From: Epiperipatus broadwayi
Taxonomy: Eukaryota; Animalia; Onychophora
Direction of reading: 5' to 3'
Assembly: GCA_028023455.1 (NCBI GenBank)
Contig: JAQFVV010000003.1
Span: forward strand, 14,198,001-14,262,000
DNA: 64,000 nt
Under the pieces are notes generated by a model, which saw only the letters and a program-made list of their open reading frames with translations, searched no databases and was not told the origin of the DNA. Both the position numbers and the translations under genes were made by a program. Shown here one piece after another: positions 1,829 through 55,520 of the stretch. The first letter of the stretch is position 1; each line of letters begins with the position of its first letter.

Positions 1829-4330
1829 GTAAGAAGACAAATGATGGTTTTGATTAGAAAAATATATATACATTTTATATTTTCCCCAAATTCATTATAA
1901 TTGAATGTTATATATTAATGATTGAAATATATAATCGAGATACACTATACATATTTTGATTTTGCATTTAATATAATAACTGGGGTTTAATTTAGATATT
2001 TCAGTACTTCTAAAATTAATATATTGTATGAATAATCACATTTTATTTGTGGATTGTTAAATCATATTATATAAAAATATTTATGTCTATATATTCGTAC
2101 ACAAAGCAAATTTTATATACTATATATGCCTTAATTAGCATTTACCTTTGTTCTGGGTCCCACAAGTCCTTTGTTCCATTTTACAAAGGATTGATAATGA
2201 AAAATTTCATCCTGCTAATTTTTTTTATTTCAAATTTGAGTAAGATTAAAATTTAATATTTTCAGAACTCTTTAGATATTTTCTGATTTATTATTATAAT
2301 TTTTTTAAAAAAATGATCGTCTGTAGTGCACCTATCTTTGTGTTGCGACATCTGATATATTGTTTTTGCAGCAGATGTGTTTCTTAAACTGCTTTGTGTT
2401 ATAAATACAATTATTGCATCCATCTCCTTCTTAACAGATTTGATTGTTATATTTTACAGTTTGAAATCATTTTTAATACATTATATATATATATTCTTTG
2501 CCCGAAGACAAGTGAAAGTAATTATGGAATAGGGTATGTGTTATCAAGTGATATGATCATTGCCTGGATTTATTATTGCTTTTTAATTCTTCAATTAACA
2601 CTATTTGTAACATATCCCATTTAGAGCTGCATCATAACTTGATAAGCCATTTGCCTCATTTATATGCATAAAATTGGTAATTGCAAATAATTACGTTTGT
2701 GCTTGTGCATATATATTCTCAAATAAAAGTTGGCATTTATGTTTATTTTCAAATATAAGATATATACTATAATCTTTTTTTTTTTAAAAAAAAATAAACA
2801 AACAATTACATGTTGCAAACATTGTCAGCCCATTCGCCAATATTTTTTCACAAAAGTTTTTTCCATGCTTTTCTGCTCTTCAATGGCATTCTCCGATTAC
2901 TAATCTATTCTTGCTATATGCACAGTATTTCTTTATTAAATATTTATAAGACATTCCAATTTAGATTCTAAACATTTATGTTTTTTAATTTTTATTTCCC
3001 AATATACTTTTTTTATACTTTATTCACTTGTAGTTGTTCAAAGTCCATGCTACACAACCATATCTCAAAATAACTGGATACATTGATTTAATGAAATATA
3101 AATAATGCACTCTTGTAATTGTCTGCTATATATATATTGTGGGTGTAAATATCCATGTACTAACTGCATAAAAAGATGCATTATTTTTATTTATTTTGTT
3201 GTCCTTTATTGTGTGAGGTTTTTTTAAAGGATTAATTTAGATTCTTAATAAGATTATTGATTTTATTATAATGTTTTTTTATATTTAGTCATAGCACCTT
3301 AATGCCTATTAAATCCAGTTGCCTTCTGGTAGAGAAAACTCCTCATTGTTAAGAGATTTTCAAAATAAATATGAATTTGTGCTATCATATATGGAGTGAA
3401 AAGTTTCATTTTTCTAGTATAAAGATTGAATATCTTACCTTGTCTTGTATCTATGATTATTCAATAAATTTTCTTTTATTGTTTCAATATACTGATAGAA
3501 TATTCCGGTATAATTTAAATAGATTTATTATTTATAGTGTAGATTTTGTAAAAAAAAATCCAATTCAATTTTCTAAAGCAGGAAATTTGATTTATCAGGT
3601 TTATTTCTTTTTTTAAAACATCTTCATTGATTTCAATCGAGGGAAAAAAAATCCAGTTTAATCAACACAACATCATTGTTGTGATATATATAAAGTTTTG
3701 CACTTTATTATAATAAATGCCATTTTTTTTAATTTTCTGTTTTGATTGGCTAACAATATTCAAGGCTTAATTTTATTTGTGCGTGTGTGTGGGGGGTTAA
3801 TTCAAAAAACACCCACAAATGAAACACCTGGAGAGGAGAAAATATCACTTAAAATATGTTCTGTACCAATCTATGATGTTACTAATTGTTATTTGTATAG
3901 CATTTGGAAATGTATAAAAGTATAAATAGAGTTTACGTTTTTATAAAAATATTTAATAATTCAAAAATGATGGAAATAACTACTAACTACAAACAAAATA
4001 AGATTAAAATTGTATTCTAAAACATGTGATATTGTTTGCATGAAGGTTTGTGTTGATAGCATTTTAGTTATATGTTGGATTATTTCCATCATTTAACATT
4101 AAGTATTGAATGTAAAAATTTGTAAACTTTTAAAATTTTTAAATTAGATTCAACTATTAATAATAGCACACAGGTTAGTATATATTTATATAGCATTTCG
4201 AGTGATATTATTCTCATGAAGAAGAGATGAGAATAATACTAATCGAAATATTGTGTATATAGTAAATATGTGTACTATTATTAACAAGTAGAAAATTTAA
4301 ATGAAGTTTAAACATTTTTGTAAAGATATT

Positions 4331-4650
4331 CATCAGCATCAACCATTATCAATACACTGCACGATGAAAGTTTCTCCAAGTTCAATCCATCTTCTTCCGA
4401 TCTTTAGCTTGTCTTCTCCACATGACCCCTGCACATTTTCTTATTTCATCCATCCATCTCACATATGGTCTTTTTCTGGGTCTTTTACAATCTCTTGGAA
4501 TCAAGTTTAAGATTTCAATTGTCCATCTATTATTATCTCTTCTAGCAATATGTCCAGCCCAACTCCACTTCAGTCTTTTAATTTTGTTAGTGAGGTCAAT
4601 AACACCTGTTTGTTCTCTTACCAATATATTGTGTTTTCGATGTCTTGTTA
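4331..4650 (-). mobile_element. 5'-truncated RTE LINE fragment (3' end plus tail)
   Basis: ORF 4382..4672 (LKWSWAGHIARRDNNRW...KRPRKRPYVRWMDEIRK) closely matches the C-terminus of the full-length RTE at 51477-51812, and the 3' tail is shared. Confidence 0.9.
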
Positions 4651-17344: not shown

Positions 17345-18850
17345 GCTTCTTTTTTTCCAAATTATTTTAGTAAATTTTCTTATCCATTCATCTTGTATAT
17401 GGTCTTTTTCAATCTCTTGAAATCCAGTTTAAGGCTTCAATTACCTATCTACTATCTACTATCATCTCTTCTGGCAATATGATCAGCCCAGCTTTACTTT
17501 AGCTTCTTAATTTATTAGTAATTATTTGTTCTTTCATTCCCATATTTCACTTTTAATCGTTTGTTAGTCCCAGATACATTCTCCATATTTTGTTATGTAG
17601 TTTGAAGTTTTTGTGTTAATCTTCTATTAACCATTCATGTCTTAGATCCATAGCATAAATTAATGTAACTATTAAAAACTTCCCCTTTTAAATACATTGG
17701 TATATTTTCATTAAATATTAGTGTATATCTATTAAAAGCATTTCATTCAAGTTTAATTCTATGATTAATTTCATTCGTTGTGTATATTTCATCTGTTTTA
17801 ATAATTTGGCTTACGGGTTTTCAATTGTTAGCTTTTTTTAATTCATGATCGACAATCTTTATTCTGTGAAAAACCATTGAACATTACTTTAGTCTTTGTC
17901 ATTAATTCTATTTTTTTTTACTTTCATTGTTTAACTCTTGTAACATTTTGTGAAATGTTATTTGGAAAAAAAAACACATACAAAAATCTAAATCTTCATT
18001 TTTGCTCCTTATATTAATGCACTAAATATAGAACTGCTGTAAAAAGTTTTGTCGATATGAAATTTCCTGAATGTACTTCTTTATCAATGTTAATTTTAGT
18101 GATATTATTTCATCTAAATTAGTGTTGTAGAATTTTAACAAATATTTGTCCATGACATTATCTCAGGTCTATATCTTTTATGTTCCAAAGTTTTAATTAA
18201 TGTGGAAATAGTGTATAGAAGTAATGAAAGATTTGTAATTATCTTATTTTTCACCATTTCAAAATATCAATATTTAACTTCCTTTTTTCAATCATCTACC
18301 TGGTACATCTTTATTACTTAGGAATTTGGTATGTAGTTTTACTAACAATTTCTCTTATTTTTTCATCTGCTTTTTTCATCAACTACTAATCTATCTGTCA
18401 TAGTTTTAATTGCATGTCTCACGTTATTTAAAATTGCTTGGCAATTCAAATGTAATTGAAGGAGATATTTGTTTTCTTATTGTTTATTACTATATAATCC
18501 TTTGTAAAATTCTTTTATACATTTTAAGGTATACCTCTTTTTAGTATTAGGGCTATCTTCTTAGTGCTCAAGCAACTTTTCTTTATTACAAAGAATTTTA
18601 TTTCAGAATTTGAAGATTTTTATTTTCTTCTATAGCTTTCTTTGTTAATTCACTGTATTTTCTTAGGCTTTAACTTATTTTCAAACTATTTGATAAAATT
18701 CCAGATGTTTAATTCTTCTTGATGGTTCATTTTTAAAATTTTCATATTCTTTTTTCCCATCATACATTGTCCTGGTTTCACTTGGAAATTTATTGAGTGA
18801 ATTGTTGCATTTTTGTATTGTTATCTAACAAGTATTATAGTATTTTATTT
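17345..18850 (-). mobile_element. Old degenerate RTE LINE relic
   Basis: Patchy similarity to the full-length RTE, e.g. caatctcttgaaatcc, atcatctcttctggcaatatg..cagccca and ttaattctatgattaatttc; no intact ORF. Confidence 0.7.
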
Positions 18851-34700: not shown

Positions 34701-35669
34701 TTCCAATCTATATGCATATTTTCCTCTTCCTGTTGATTTCTTGATGCATATTAATAGCAGCACATGAAGGACTTCTTACTTTTGTATTTAGGTGATCACC
34801 TTTGTCATACAAAAAAGAATTTGTCATAGTTCTCATATTTTTTAATAAAGGCACTGAAATAGATTTCCAGTTTTTATAACAAATCTTTTTAGAGCCTTGG
34901 TTAAGACATCTAGATATTGAAATTTGATTGAGATCAAATGTAAATTGTTTTTTTCAATTAATAAGTAATAAAAGTTGCAATTTTTTTAACAGTTTATTTA
35001 CTGAAATATGTTATAAGAGGGAGGAGCTATAATGGCAAAAATTTATATTATATTAAACACTCCAATTTAGAATTTCCTTATATATATATTACATTTTTTA
35101 AAATCGTAAATATTTGCATTCCAAACTTATTTCAGACTACTTTTTTCCTATAGTTACATAAAAATATTAAGAGTTTAGATAATATAAGATTTTGATATCT
35201 ATATATAATTATAATTTCAACTTTATAGGATGAAAGATTTTTGTTCTATAAACATTAAATTATACACATAATTTTTTTCATTAGATACCAATGACATCAA
35301 GTAATGCATAAACATCTAACTGATAAATTTGAGTGCTCTGCTTTAGAATACGAATCTTTATTTTGACAATGATAATGTAAGATGTTCCAAATGTGAATGA
35401 AGAAAATAATGATGAAGAAAAAGAAAATATATAATGCCAAGTCTGCTTCCAATATACTGTACAAAATGTCATATCAAAATTGAGCCTGTTGAAAAAGAAT
35501 TCTACAGTAATTGATGACAAATACAAGGTATACTTTGATCATGAATAAATTTTATGAAATTATGGAGTATTTGAGAAAGTATTTTAGGTTTTTATATATT
35601 CCAAGTCAGATCTTAGTTTGGAGAGTCTAATGCTCTCCAAAGGGATTCTATACATATTTCTACAATGGG

Positions 35670-36400
35670 TGAGTATTGGATCATTTATATACAGATCTGT
35701 AATATTGTCATTCTGAAGAATATTTATCAAAATGCAGTGATTAAATTAGTTATACTAAGACAATATTAAGAATGATGTACAACAGGTTAATTCCATATCT
35801 CCAAAACTTTTTCCAGCAGTTTTAGAAGTATTTTGTGAATTAAAATGGGAAGCTAAAGGAGTAAAGTAAATGGAAATTAGTTAAGCAATCAAAAGATTTT
35901 GCAGATATGGTTGTTTTTGCAAGTAATATTTCAGAGCTTTAGAAAATACTACAAGAATTATCAGATGAAAGGAAGACGAAATATAAATACTAAAAAGAGT
36001 AAAGTAATGTTCAATGGATTTTCTTTGAAGAAAATAAAGATTAATAATCAGTTAGAAATTAACAAATACCTTGGCCATAATCATAGAATTAAACTTGAAT
36101 GATAGAAATAATAAGGATTAAAAATGAAAAATATAGATGAGAAAACACAGGTATTGCTGTATCATTGATGAATTGAGATTGAAATGGAACTGGGATGGAC
36201 ACTATGACAATAGATGACAGTTGAAGTCAAACTGGATCTCAAAGGATTATAGTACCTAAAAAGAGATCACAAGATATGGATGTATGAAATAAGGAAGTTT
36301 TTTAAGTGATTCAGAAAAGAGAAGCTAGAAATAAGAGAAATTGGATTAAGTTTAGAGACTCATCCTGCAGTTGATTATTAATGGTTGAAAATGATAATGA
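35670..36400 (+). mobile_element. Degenerate RTE LINE 3' half (RT to tail)
   Basis: NIKNDVQQVNSISPKLFPAVLEVFCELKWEAKGVK versus NIEKGVRQGDSISPKLFTAVLQEVFCGLKWETKGVK in the young copy; 3' end catcctgcagttgattattaatggttga matches the RTE terminus. Confidence 0.8.
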
Positions 36401-50200: not shown

Positions 50201-51476
50201 AAAGCTGCCATTGAATGTGGGATAGTATATGAAATTGTGTTAGATCATGTGCAAGCATTTAAAAATGTGAATGAGGTAGCGAATTCAAGTACATAGGTAA
50301 ATTCAGCAAAGCCACAGGCAATACAGAAGAATTTGATACAGAAGGCTAATGTCTGTTAATGCAAAAAGAAGAGCCATATTTGAAAGGCCATTTGTCAAAG
50401 GTTTGCAATAATGAAAGACAAATGTCAAAAGCTGATTTATCAACATGTAGTAAATCAAAAAGAGAAGTAGAAAAGAATGCCATGAACATGAGAATAATAA
50501 AGGAAAGTGAAGATATGCCAAAACTTTTAGAAGTTAATATTTGTGGACAAATAATAAAAATGTAAATAGATAGTGGGGCAGGTATAACACTCTTGTCGCT
50601 TAAAGGTTGGATAGCTATTGGCAAAAGAGCCAATAATAATATGCATATTAAAAAAACTAATTTAGTGGCAACAGATATTAATGGAAATAAGATTAAATAT
50701 TGAAGAAATGGTATTAGTACTTGTAAAAATGAATAGTCACAATAAAAATTTACTACTATATGCAATAATAAAATATATTAGTCTAATATTGAATGTAGTT
50801 GGTTCCAATCTCTCAGAATAAGCATTGGATGCTTTAAAAGTGCCAAAGTGAAAATTAATGGCCAGAATAAAATTTCAACTGCTATATAAGATGGGTCTGA
50901 CAAGATTAGTAAACTTAGAATGGATGAGAAATGACAAATGTTGCAAATTTGTAAAAAATTGCGTAAAATATAGATGGCCAAAGAAGCAACAAAATGATGT
51001 AGTACTACAAATTTGGAATGCTTAGGAAAGTGTGTCAATGTGTCACGAGAGTATTTTAATGACAGACAGTGTAGTAATTCCAACTGAGAAGAAATGTGTT
51101 CAACAACTGTTACACAAAGGACCCGGGAAATTGTTCAGATGAAGGAAGTACCTTGTTTGTATCAGTGGGGTCTGAAAATGACAAATTGTAAAAAAATGCC
51201 AAGCTTGTCAACAGTTAAAGAATATCAGCACTTCATGCCAAGTTCTGTTACAAAGAAAACTTTGGCAGAATTTACTTATGAAGTGCCAGATAAGGATGCA
51301 TATGTCTATACTAATTCCAGAAAAGGTTAAAATAAAGTATGCAAATTGTGAAATCATAAAATTTAGTTTAGGACAGATCATCTGGATTAAAGATACTTTA
51401 AGAAAAAAATGTATATCTGGGAAAACAAGCAGAATGCTATCTACCCAAATCATCATCATCATCATCATCATTATCA

Positions 51477-54424
51477 TCAACCATTATCAATCCACTGCAG
51501 GATGAAGGTCTCTCCAAGTTTAATCCATCTTCTCTGATTTTTAGCTTCTCTTCTCCACAATACCCCTGCACATTTTCTTATTTCATCCATCCATCTCACA
51601 TGTGGTCTCTTTCTGGGTCTTTTACAATCTCTTGGAATCCTGTTGAAAATTTCAATTGTCCATCTATTATCATCTCTTCTAGCAATATGTACAGCCCAAC
51701 TCCATTTCAATCTTTTAATTTTTTCAATAAGGTCAGTAACACCTGTTTGTTGTCTTACCCATACATTGCGTTTTCGATCTCTTCTTGTTACTCCCAACAT
51801 ACACCTCTCCATACTCCTTTAAGTGGTCTGAAGTCTCTGTATTGCTCTTCTATTAAGTGTCCAAGTCTCAGATCCATAAGTAAGAACTGGTAAAACACAT
51901 TTGTTAAAAACCATCCTTTTCAAACACATAGGCATATTTCCTTTTAGTATCAAGTTATTTCTACCAAAAGCACTCCAACCAAGTTTAATTCTATGATTAA
52001 TTTCCTCCATTATGTTTCCATCTGTATTAATAATCTGACCAAGGTATTTGTAACTGTTAACTTCTTCTAATTCTTCATAATCAATCTTTATTTTCATATT
52101 TTGAGCAAATCGATTAAACATTACTTTAGTCTTTTTAACATTTATCTTTAGTCCTACTTTTCTGCTAACTCCTGCAACATTTCCTGTAGCTCTGAAGCAT
52201 TATTTGCAAAAACAACTACATCATCTGCAAAATCTAAATGACTTAAATACTCTCCATTTACTTTCACTCCTTTAGTTTCCCATTTTAATCCACAAAATAC
52301 TTCTTGCAGCACTGCTGTAAAGAGTTTTGGAGATATGGAGTCACCTTGTCTTACACCTTTCTCAATGTTGATTTTTCCAGTATCATTATGTAATATAATT
52401 GTTGCTGTTGCATTTTTATAAATATTCTTTAAAATATGACAATATCCTGGATCTATACCTTGATGATCCAATGCTTTAATCACTGAAGAAATGTGTATAG
52501 AATCAAATGCCTGTTCATAATCTACAAATCCAAAACATAAAGACAACTCATATTCGTTTGTCCTTTCTATGACTTCTCTCAATACCTGGATATGATCTAT
52601 TGTACTAAAACCACTTTTAAATCCAGCTTGTTTTCTTGGTTGGTGGAAATCCAAAGTTCTCTGTAGACGAGTTGTAATTATCTTGGTAAAAAATTTATAT
52701 AAAACTGATAAAAGGCTGATAGGTCTGTAATTTCTAATATCTTCTTTGTCACCTTTTTTAAATATTAATATTATTACTGCATTCTTCCAATCTTCCAGTA
52801 CATCTTTATCATTTAGACATTTGGTATATAACTTTGCTAAAATTGTTTCTATTTCTTCACCTGCTTCTTTTAATACATCAATTATAATTCCATCATTTCC
52901 TGGAGCCTTTCCTTTCTTCATACACTTAATTGCATGTCTCACTTCTTCATTTAAAATTCTGGGCAATTCGGAAGATGTAATAGATATAGGAGGTACTTGT
53001 TCTTTATTACTATATAATTCTTGATAAAAATCTTCTACCAATTTCATGATGTCATCTCTCTTTTTAGTAATAATTCCATCTTTTTTTCTTATTGCAGATA
53101 TAAATTTCCTACCAATACCAAAATGTTGTTTAACATTTTTGAGACTTTTATTTTCTTCTACAGCTTTCCTTGCTATTTTACAGTTATACTTTCTTATATC
53201 ATTTTCAACTCTTTTCCGTACCATTTTACAAAATTCGAGATATTCAATTCTTTTTAATACATCATTTTTGTATATCTTCATATTCCTTCTTTTCTTCATA
53301 AATTCTCTAGTCTCAGTAGAAATTTTATTAGTCAATTGCTGCTTTTTTCTACCAGCTATGTTTGTTGCAGTTTTTAAAAGTGTATCAGTTATTTTCATAT
53401 TAATTTCATTCAAATCTATATCATGTTCAAAATCTCCTAACACTTGAAACCTATTTGTAAGTTCTAATTTAAATTCATTAGAATGTTTCTGAAGATTAGG
53501 AATATCAACTGTAAATATTGTTTTTCTTAATAATTTTTGTCTCTCTAGTTTTACATTAACACGTAACTTACACCTTACTAATCGATGATCACTTTCTGTG
53601 TTAAATTTATTAAGAACATTACAATCTTGAAATATGTATTTTCTGTTAGTCAAAATATAATCCAATTCTGCTGTACCTTCATTTGGATGCTTCCATGTCC
53701 ATTTCCTTTTAACATTTTTCTCAAAAAATGAATTCATAATATAAAGTTTTTAATTTTCTGCAAACTCCACAAGTCTATGTCCTCTCTCATTTCTATTACC
53801 ATAACCAAAATTACCTACAGCAATTTCATCTTTCATTTGTCTACCAATTCTAGCATTAAAGTCTCCCATAACAATTTTAAAATGTTGTTTACTCTGATCA
53901 AAAGCCTTTTGTACATCCATATAAAAATCTTCTACTACTTCATCACTATGAGAACTTGTTGGGGCATAAACCTGAATTATCTGCATTTGGTATCTGCTAT
54001 TAAGTTGTATAACTAATCTTGCCACTCTGTCTGATACACCATCAATCTCCACAATATTGTTCTTCCACTTTTTATTTATAATGAATCCTACTCCACTTGT
54101 ATTTCCAATATGTGTGCCTTTATAATAGAGTATATGTCCACTTTTTAAATCAATTGTTTCTTCTCCTTTTCTTCTAACTTCACAAAGTCCAATAATGTCC
54201 CATTTAATATAAGACAGTTCTTCTTTTAATTCTTGCAATCTTTCTTCACTTGAAAGTGATCTGCAGTTGTAAGTACCTAAATAAAAAGTCGTCATCAAAT
54301 GGCAGCCTGGGTCCGCAATCAGGGGATTCTTAGCACCCTCCGCCTTCGGCCACCAACCGCTGCCTTGGTTGGTGACTTTACAGCCTCCTGGGAATAAGGG
54401 CCATGCTTTATTTTTGTCTGTCAT
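51477..54424 (-). pseudogene. RTE APE endonuclease / reverse transcriptase ORF with three lesions
   Basis: APE motifs TYNCRSL, VYAPT, GDFNA and SDHRLV; RT motifs NYRPISLLS, QGDSISPKLF and DFADD. In-frame TAA at ~53750, a 1 nt deletion in an A-run at ~52158, and in-frame TAA at ~51819. Confidence 0.95.
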
Positions 54425-54582
54425 AATTGTATATATGTATTGGAAAAATATTTATCATTTACACAAACATTCATTCTGCCTTATCAGGCACTGAGAAGAA
54501 AGACCATGGTGTTTCTTGATCTTAAACTCAGAGGTAAAAAGCCAATAAACTCACCACGCTGGCTAATGTGTGTTGGTGAGCA

Positions 54583-54749
54583 GCCCATCCATGTTCGTAT
54601 ACTATATAAATAATCACATAGTAATAACAGCTGCAACGACAAGAACGTATGGAGTGGACATTAGGAATTTGCCCTGCTCGGTTCCTTTAAGGCCTCCAAA
54701 AGGAATCAAAGGGTTCCTTTCAGTTAATAGCAAACTCCTTTTTGCAGCC
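54583..54749 (-). ncRNA. HDV/CPEB3-like self-cleaving ribozyme at the RTE 5' end
   Basis: P1 GGCUGCA (54749-54743) / UGCAGCU (54635-54629) with a G1-U wobble. P3 ACG/CGU with L3 UUCUUGU, then GU after P1'. 10 bp P4; J4/2 CGAAC (C at 54597). P2 GUCCACUCCAU / AUGGAUGGGC. G1 coincides with the TSD-defined end. Confidence 0.8.
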
Positions 54750-55520
54750 TCTACCCAAATATGGTTAATTAAATTAGAGGATAATAGAGTAGTAACATGA
54801 CACATGAATCATATAAAAGAGTGTGTAATTGAGCCGATAGAAGTTATAAATGATAACACAGATTTGGCTACTAATCAGATTAAATTTTTTTTAAAAAAAA
54901 TAAAAACATTAAGGCCAATGTGTCTACAAATATTGAGATAGACATAGAAGAAAAATCTTCTAGGCAAGAAGATGAAGGAAAAATTCCTAGTCTAGATTTA
55001 CAGCAACCATCAGCAGGCAATGTTATGTGACTCTAGAATCAACTGCAAGTAATCTACATAGTCTAATTTGCATAACAATAATTCTCTAACAATATACAAA
55101 TTAGCAGAGTTATTAAAAATGCCTGCAAAATTTTTAATAGGAGTAAGTCAGACTAGTGATACTAGTAGAGCAGAATAAAAGCAGCTTAATATATACAGTG
55201 CAGAAAAAGTGAAATGCAGTCAAATCTAATTAGATTGACCCAGAGATGTGAGTGAAAAATAAAGTGCTTACTAAAACTGAAGTTGAAAAGCAGAATAAAT
55301 GCTAATGAAATTGTTGTGAAAAACTAAAATAGAAAATTATAGAAGTGAAATGATAAACTTTAATTAAAGTGAATAGATATTAAAAAAAGACTTAATAAAA
55401 ATAGAAATAGAGTCTAACTCTATTCATGAAGTTTAATCAGTAAGGTTGCTAATTGAACACATTAACTCACTACTCATTCATATATATATTAACTAATCTT
55501 TCTTATTGCATTGCCAAATG

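Follow-up and report, generated by a model that had tools for sequence, protein, structure and literature searches.

HDV-like self-cleaving ribozymes have been known in RTE retrotransposons since 2009–2011. Those located at the 5′ ends of RTEs cut at the first base of the element (PMC3774820, PMC6765202), and in one of them, drz-Agam-2-1, a structured J1/2, short linkers and a long P2 speed cleavage almost 1000-fold, the P1.2 domain, short linkers and extended P2 acting to 'pinch' P1 and P2 together (PMC4908430). The R2 elements similarly have a 5′-terminal HDV-like ribozyme that processes the co-transcript, with the cut in Drosophila at the first base of the element (PMC3774820), although R2 targets the 28S rDNA specifically and depends on Pol I for its transcription, whereas RTEs occupy dispersed sites with TSDs. 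The twister variants of Perere-3, a non-LTR element of Schistosoma mansoni encoding APE and RT, follow the same logic with a different class of ribozyme; the cut site of the 5′ ribozyme abuts the TSD, and the cleaved RNA is still translated (PMC8501958).

Here we report on the 5′ end of an RTE element in a 64,000-nucleotide stretch of the genome of the onychophoran Epiperipatus broadwayi, the whole of which is referred to as the window. A preliminary description had placed an HDV-like ribozyme exactly at the 5′ end of this element, and both the fold and the TSD support this in silico. The predicted ribozyme at 54749-54583 adds a member to a known kind, the HDV-like ribozymes of RTE 5′ ends; what is new is a pseudoknot conserved in nine RTE lineages.

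Results

The RTE element and its insertion site

The element is a non-LTR retrotransposon of 3299 bp, running from 54749 to 51451 on the minus strand of the window, with the features listed in Table 1. A perfect 11-bp TSD flanks it, with the sequences beyond differing on both sides, and the edge of the TSD sets G54749 as the first base of the element. The predicted cleavage-site nucleotide, G1, had been described as the first base inside the TSD, and this is the case, with G54749 directly abutting ATTTGGGTAGA. The nearest proteins to that encoded by the open reading frame are RTE-type 'craniofacial development protein 2-like' proteins of many animals, with no more than 63% identity, and several traits of RTEs are present, including the length of ~3.3 kb, a single frame containing both APE and RT, a short simple-repeat tail, and the TSD. 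On the basis of its domains, size, tail, TSD and nearest proteins, we assign the element to the RTE clade of non-LTR retrotransposons.

The open reading frame is interrupted by in-frame stops at 53752-53750 and 51821-51819, and by a frameshift between 52199 and 52157. The copy at 54749-51451 is dead and encodes no intact protein, and the ribozyme is thus a fossil at this locus, albeit one that may still cut transcripts crossing 54749-54583. Three further RTE fragments are present in the window, at 4330-4649, 17401-18817 and 35644-36400, all of which are 5′-truncated. These are 89%, 67–69% and 71–75% identical to the element, respectively, so that the 64 kb contains no fewer than two or three RTE subfamilies.

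Table 1. Features of the RTE element, its predicted 5′ ribozyme, and the leaders of related RTEs. Positions are those of the window unless a lineage is named; sequences are given as RNA or DNA of the minus strand.
Feature	Position	Strand	Remarks
5′ TSD copy	54750..54760		ATTTGGGTAGA as read on the minus strand; matches 51450-51440
3′ TSD copy	51440..51450		direct repeat of 54750..54760
(GAT)n microsatellite tail	51451..51479	minus	
Endonuclease (APE) part of ORF	53750..54424	minus	Exo_endo_phos domain
Reverse-transcriptase part of ORF, three pieces	51477..53737	minus	RVT_1 domain
P1 5′ strand	54743..54749	minus	GGCUGCA; predicted cleavage 5′ of G54749; unpaired in nested MFE fold
J1/2	54660..54742	minus	linker AAA 54742-40, P1.2 rod 54739-54663, linker AAU 54662-60
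P2 5′ strand	54649..54659	minus	GUCCACUCCAU; C54654 bulged; pairs with 54592-54583
P3, L3, P3′	54636..54648	minus	ACG, UUCUUGU, CGU; ACG 54648-46 pairs with CGU 54638-36
P1 3′ strand	54629..54635	minus	UGCAGCU; U54629 pairs with G1
J1/4	54627..54628	minus	GU; G54628-C54643 is the putative one-pair P1.1
P4 hairpin	54598..54626	minus	A/U-rich
J4/2	54593..54597	minus	CGAAC; C54597 is the equivalent of catalytic C75
P2 3′ strand	54583..54592	minus	AUGGAUGGGC
H-type pseudoknot	54540..54580	minus	S1 54580-54574/54556-54550; S2 54564-54560/54544-54540
Pseudoknot in relatives	L004:2451-2492		
	L013:1451-1492		
	L005:448-489		
	L006:155-194		
	L015:594-632		
	L017:207-245		
	L018:350-390		
	L019:1162-1201		
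(C)UGUAAG-loop hairpin in relatives	L018:210-345		
	L019:900-945		
	L005:400-440		
	L015:560-590		
	L016:1160-1200		

The predicted ribozyme fold

The nested double pseudoknot is complete, with all of its components in the correct order (P1 5′ strand, J1/2, P2 5′ strand, P3, L3, P3′, P1 3′ strand, J1/4, P4, J4/2 and P2 3′ strand), and each of the helices drawn in the preliminary description was found in place on the minus strand when checked against the sequence. P1 is 7 bp in length and opens with a G1·U wobble, and P2 contains 10 bp and one bulged C. L3 is 7 nt long, and its first U and sixth G are able to form a reverse wobble, a putative tertiary pair. In the MFE fold P4 has 10 contiguous bp followed by two more beyond a 1-nt bulge, and J4/2 fits the pattern C-N-R-A, in which the cytosine at the catalytic position is followed by A-minor adenosines. 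When the whole 167 nt is folded without pseudoknots the MFE is −49.5 kcal/mol, with a z score of −3.5 relative to 200 shuffles; P1.2, P2 and P4 are all formed in this nested fold.

The description of J1/2 as an 83-nt structured domain is borne out by the MFE fold, in which it has a closing stem of its own, 10 bp in length (AGGAGUUUGC/GCAAAUUCCU), and carries repeated AAAGGAA/UUCCUUU motifs. The features by which a P1.2-type domain is recognized (PMC4908430) are present, namely the rod, the two 3-nt linkers and an extended 10-bp P2, and as modelled here J1/2 and P2 together constitute a 'P1.2 pinch' architecture like that of drz-Agam-2-1.

Descriptor and Rfam searches

A descriptor was built from canonical HDV-family constraints only, but was composed after the candidate had been seen. 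It requires a 3-bp Watson-Crick P3 and a 7-nt L3 containing U1, C3 and G6, then a 7-nt P1 3′ strand ending in U and a J1/4 opening with G, three or more closing bp in P4, a J4/2 of C-N-R-A and at least 4 proximal P2 pairs, together with a perfect 7-bp P1 partner whose first base is G and which lies no more than 120 nt upstream. There is a single match in the window, at 54749-54583. Among 300 dinucleotide shuffles of the 64 kb, with both strands searched, there were no full matches and 0.01 core matches per shuffle, a result that is an upper bound on the significance because the descriptor postdates the candidate. A chance fold at 54749-54583 is very unlikely.

No HDV-family model in Rfam was matched at its gathering score in searches of 8 kb and of 216 nt. 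For the 216-nt stretch, the best of the 4227 families is drz-agam-1 (RF01787), with 16.5 bits and an E value of 0.5 relative to a gathering score of 37, and RF00094, RF00622 (CPEB3) and RF01788 (drz-Agam-2) gave no match at E values up to 10. In the drz-agam-1 alignment P2, P3, L3, P4 and J4/2 all fall in the register drawn previously, but the P1 5′ strand of the model lands on unrelated bases, because P1 here is 83 nt further upstream. The Rfam HDV models represent particular subfamilies, are blind to pseudoknots, and penalise the 83-nt J1/2; the sub-threshold score therefore speaks against these subfamilies and not against the class, and as judged by these models the sequence falls in none of Rfam's HDV subfamilies. 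The suggestion that this is a possibly undescribed family member thus stands at the sequence level, where all Rfam models are below threshold, but not for the kind of ribozyme, which was already known (PMC6765202, PMC3774820).

DNA patterns of the ribozyme core have no match in viral contigs, and protein-guided scans of viral contigs for further copies yielded nothing. Three metagenome contigs match the core pattern but share no other similarity, and we attribute these to chance. A peptide read across the ribozyme has no matching protein.

Variation among copies of the family

One DNA run and three 'RNA?' runs were examined through their Logan contigs, aligned to positions 54150-55050. The RTE family to which the element belongs is extremely abundant, with 64,306 contig pieces of the DNA run on the 600 bp from 54150 to 54749. 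The summed depth of this run falls ~1000-fold, from ~336,000 in the bin at 54739-54769 to ~400 in that at 54770-54800, placing the 5′ end of the family at, or a few bases from, G1. The preliminary description would have been refuted had other full-length copies started elsewhere, and the collapse in depth near 54749/54750 indicates otherwise. Contigs have no direction and are silent on the 5′ ends of RNAs, and the contig ends seen at G1 in the 'RNA?' runs are not taken as a sign of cleavage, since de Bruijn contigs terminate at repeat edges of any kind.

The variant tables list 40 of the 149 variant sites, per site and without linkage, and among the sites listed at least 7 with common substitutions lie in the ribozyme. 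Two of these are in P4, one at 54608, where most of the family carries the variant, and one at 54617, and they change G·U to G-C and A-U; the variant at 54700, in the apical stem of P1.2 and also the family majority, changes G·U to G-C. The variant at 54614 sits atop P4, and the indels at 54713/54714 are located within one of the internal loops of P1.2, with no common variant in P1, P2, L3 or J1/4 among the sites listed. CpG transitions account for three of the listed ribozyme variants (C54597 to U, G54637 to A, and C54647 to U). The catalytic-position C54597, which is in a CpG, is read as U in 14–33% of the family depth. The P3 pair C54647:G54637 varies at both members, each of which is also in a CpG, with the two changes at frequencies of 39% and 41% in one run, 22% and 22% in a second, and 6% and 38% in the DNA run; these are compensatory only if linked.

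This pattern of variation fits a structured RNA whose genomic copies are decaying neutrally at CpGs. The loss of C54597 in 14–33% and the decay of both P3 CpGs indicate that the genomic copies are not under selection, as expected for LINE fossils. The catalytic core, including G1·U, the C and G of L3, CGAA in J4/2 and the one-pair P1.1, is intact both here and in the majority of the family.

Near-identical 31-mers are present in runs, both DNA and 'RNA?', that are labelled as at least 16 organisms, and the family would appear to be either recent and clade-wide, or to have spread between species. There are also hundreds (at least 887) of internal 'skip' joints between family contigs within 54150-54700, which suggests that there are many internally deleted, possibly non-autonomous, derivatives that retain the 5′ leader. 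We note in addition that many of the family contigs have one extra base at 54489.

Relationships to other HDV-like ribozymes

The comparison previously drawn with the long-J1/2 ribozymes of the Anopheles drz-Agam-2 type is supported in silico (PMC4908430). Both drz-Agam-2-1 and drz-Agam-2-2 of Anopheles gambiae RTEs share with the ribozyme described here the location at an RTE 5′ end, a large structured J1/2 (P1.2) and short linkers, and the extended P2 is 12 bp in drz-Agam-2-1 and 10 bp plus a bulge here (PMC4908430). However, the P1.2 described here takes the form of a rod of 77 nt interrupted by internal loops, and no sequence similarity to drz-Agam-2 was detected with RF01788.

There is also what we take to be a likeness to the CPEB3 ribozyme, namely the L3 of the form UUC..GU, the GU of J1/4 giving a single C-G P1.1, the CGAA of J4/2, and a 7-nt P1 opening with G·U. 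The CPEB3 ribozyme differs in having a short J1/2 and in its location in a mammalian intron, at a single conserved host locus outside any retrotransposon.

A conserved pseudoknot downstream of the predicted ribozyme

An H-type pseudoknot with the core CCAAC...CCAGCGUGG begins 2 nt past the ribozyme, and is composed of S1 (CUCACCA/UGGUGAG), L1 (ACACACAUU), S2 (AGCCA/UGGCU), L2 (GCG) and L3 (UUUAU). Relatives were fetched via their endonuclease proteins, with 12 protein look-ups providing DNA for 10 loci in 9 distinct lineages, and the pseudoknot is the only stretch of the leader that can be aligned among them. A covariance model constructed from the pseudoknot itself finds it in nine lineages, those of the window element and of the eight relatives so listed in Table 1, with E values from 1e-9 to 1e-13; a diverged version is present in L016. 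The endonuclease ORFs of the pseudoknot-bearing RTE lineages are 44–62% identical to that of the window element.

The conservation is of structure as well as of sequence in S1, which is 98% paired and in which 4 of the 7 pairs are changed on both sides (e.g. CUGCCA/UGGCAG, UCGCCA/UGGCGA and CCUUCCA/UGGAAGG); covariation at this level is not attained in any of 500 shuffles, and it collapses in slid controls. For S2 the column count fails, with the register slipping between lineages, and when it is anchored by hand on the invariant CC/GG there are three covarying positions (GAACC/GGUUC, AGGCC/GGCCU, GGACCA/UGGUCC and UUGCCA/UGGCAA). The distance from the pseudoknot to the AUG is ~7–27 nt in the relatives and ~115 nt in the window family. 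The corresponding part of the window (54424-54540) contains short upstream ORFs, such as that with an AUG at 54495 in the context CACCAUGG and a stop after 7 codons. No Rfam family covers 54580-54540, and we found no description of this pseudoknot in the literature searched. Six matches to the pseudoknot pattern in prokaryote genomes are in coding sequence or terminator-like hairpins, and are considered to be chance.

The HDV-like fold was found in none of the nine related RTE lineages using either strict or relaxed descriptors, and there is no Rfam ribozyme in their DNA. The pseudoknot is thus kept where the HDV-like fold is absent, and is the more conserved half of the leader. The leader of L017 opens with GGGGGGU, 18 nt into a Logan contig, and a P1-like pair there (GGGGGGU/ACCCCCU at 19-25 and 108-114, ~90 nt apart and with G·U first) was rejected, as neither a P3/L3 nor a J4/2 of acceptable form could be drawn with it. 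Several of the relatives have in common a hairpin whose loop is (C)UGUAAG (Table 1), and its outer stem in L018 and L019 has a compensatory change (GACUAA/UUAGUC and GACCAA/UUGGUC). This hairpin precedes the pseudoknot by 40–150 nt, at the site occupied by the HDV-like fold in the window family, and matches no known ribozyme family.

Discussion

The first 167 nt of this RTE element are most likely an HDV-like self-cleaving ribozyme inherited from an active master copy of the family. The analysis shows the fold, its departure from chance, and the coincidence of G1 with both the edge of the TSD and the 5′ end of the family, whereas catalysis, co-transcription and a biological role are inferred. 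RTEs are thought to be promoterless and to be read through from host transcription, and the leader would adopt the nested double pseudoknot while still being transcribed. The P1.2 rod, the two 3-nt linkers and the extended P2 would draw P1 and P2 together, and C54597 and a bound Mg2+ would catalyse attack by the 2′-OH of the upstream nucleotide, cutting the RNA 5′ of G54749. The freed RNA would begin at G1 and act as the template for target-primed reverse transcription which, if full-length, would generate full-length copies that open with G1, inside the TSD. Freeing of the element RNA from read-through transcripts, as proposed in the preliminary description, is the presumed role of the ribozyme, and has support in silico.

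An alternative is that the 167 nt form a structured 5′ leader that derives from, or resembles, an HDV-like ribozyme but does not cleave, serving as a promoter-proximal, translation or protein-binding element, with the 5′ end of the RTE corresponding to a transcription start. The Rfam score of 16.5, below the threshold of 37, is compatible with such a leader, and the relatives that retain the downstream pseudoknot without the HDV-like fold indicate that not all RTEs have their 5′ ends processed by this fold; however, all of the core features are intact, and a start site placed precisely at G1 would be an unexplained coincidence, and we regard this as unlikely. The position of G1, both at the TSD edge and at the family-wide 5′ end, likewise argues against the proposal that A/U-rich hairpins of a 27% GC genome have simply permitted an HDV-like fold to be drawn by chance. 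P4 and part of P2 are indeed A/U-rich, like the genome, with P4 and several of the P2 pairs being A-U or G·U, and the descriptor followed the sighting of the candidate. Nonetheless, a chance fold is hard to credit given that no shuffle matches, that the independent best match in Rfam is an HDV-like family aligned in the same register, and that tens of thousands of contig pieces retain the sequence, as do runs bearing the labels of many different organisms.

We think it highly improbable that the ribozyme has been exapted by the host for cutting the pre-mRNA of a surrounding gene, as has been proposed for the CPEB3 intron. The preliminary description put the element in the same orientation as SMIM29, the pre-mRNA of which it could cut if it lay within the transcript, and the core does resemble that of the CPEB3 ribozyme, but this is one of very many copies of a dispersed repeat, it lies inside a decayed element, and nothing distinguishes the copy at 54749-51451 from the others. 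SMIM29 was not located in the window, and a membrane-protein-like ORF at 47423-47088 on the minus strand has no Pfam match and no homologue.

The R2 5′ pseudoknot binds the element's own protein. With some hesitation, we suggest that the RTE leader might be a module in two parts, a self-cleaving 5′ ribozyme and, 2 nt beyond it, a pseudoknot not described before that either enables translation of the uncapped 5′-OH RNA or binds the protein of the element.

The self-cleaving ribozyme proposed here would extend to a further lineage the use of HDV-like ribozymes for 5′ trimming by LINEs, in a host with a very AT-rich genome. The P1.2 'pinch' architecture, studied until now in just one mosquito ribozyme, would gain a second natural example. 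The family is also extremely abundant, and aligning its copies across the genome would yield a large natural mutational data set for the HDV-like fold. If the pseudoknot recruits ribosomes or the RTE protein to the cap-less RNA, then this would account for the expression of LINE RNAs that have been processed by a ribozyme.
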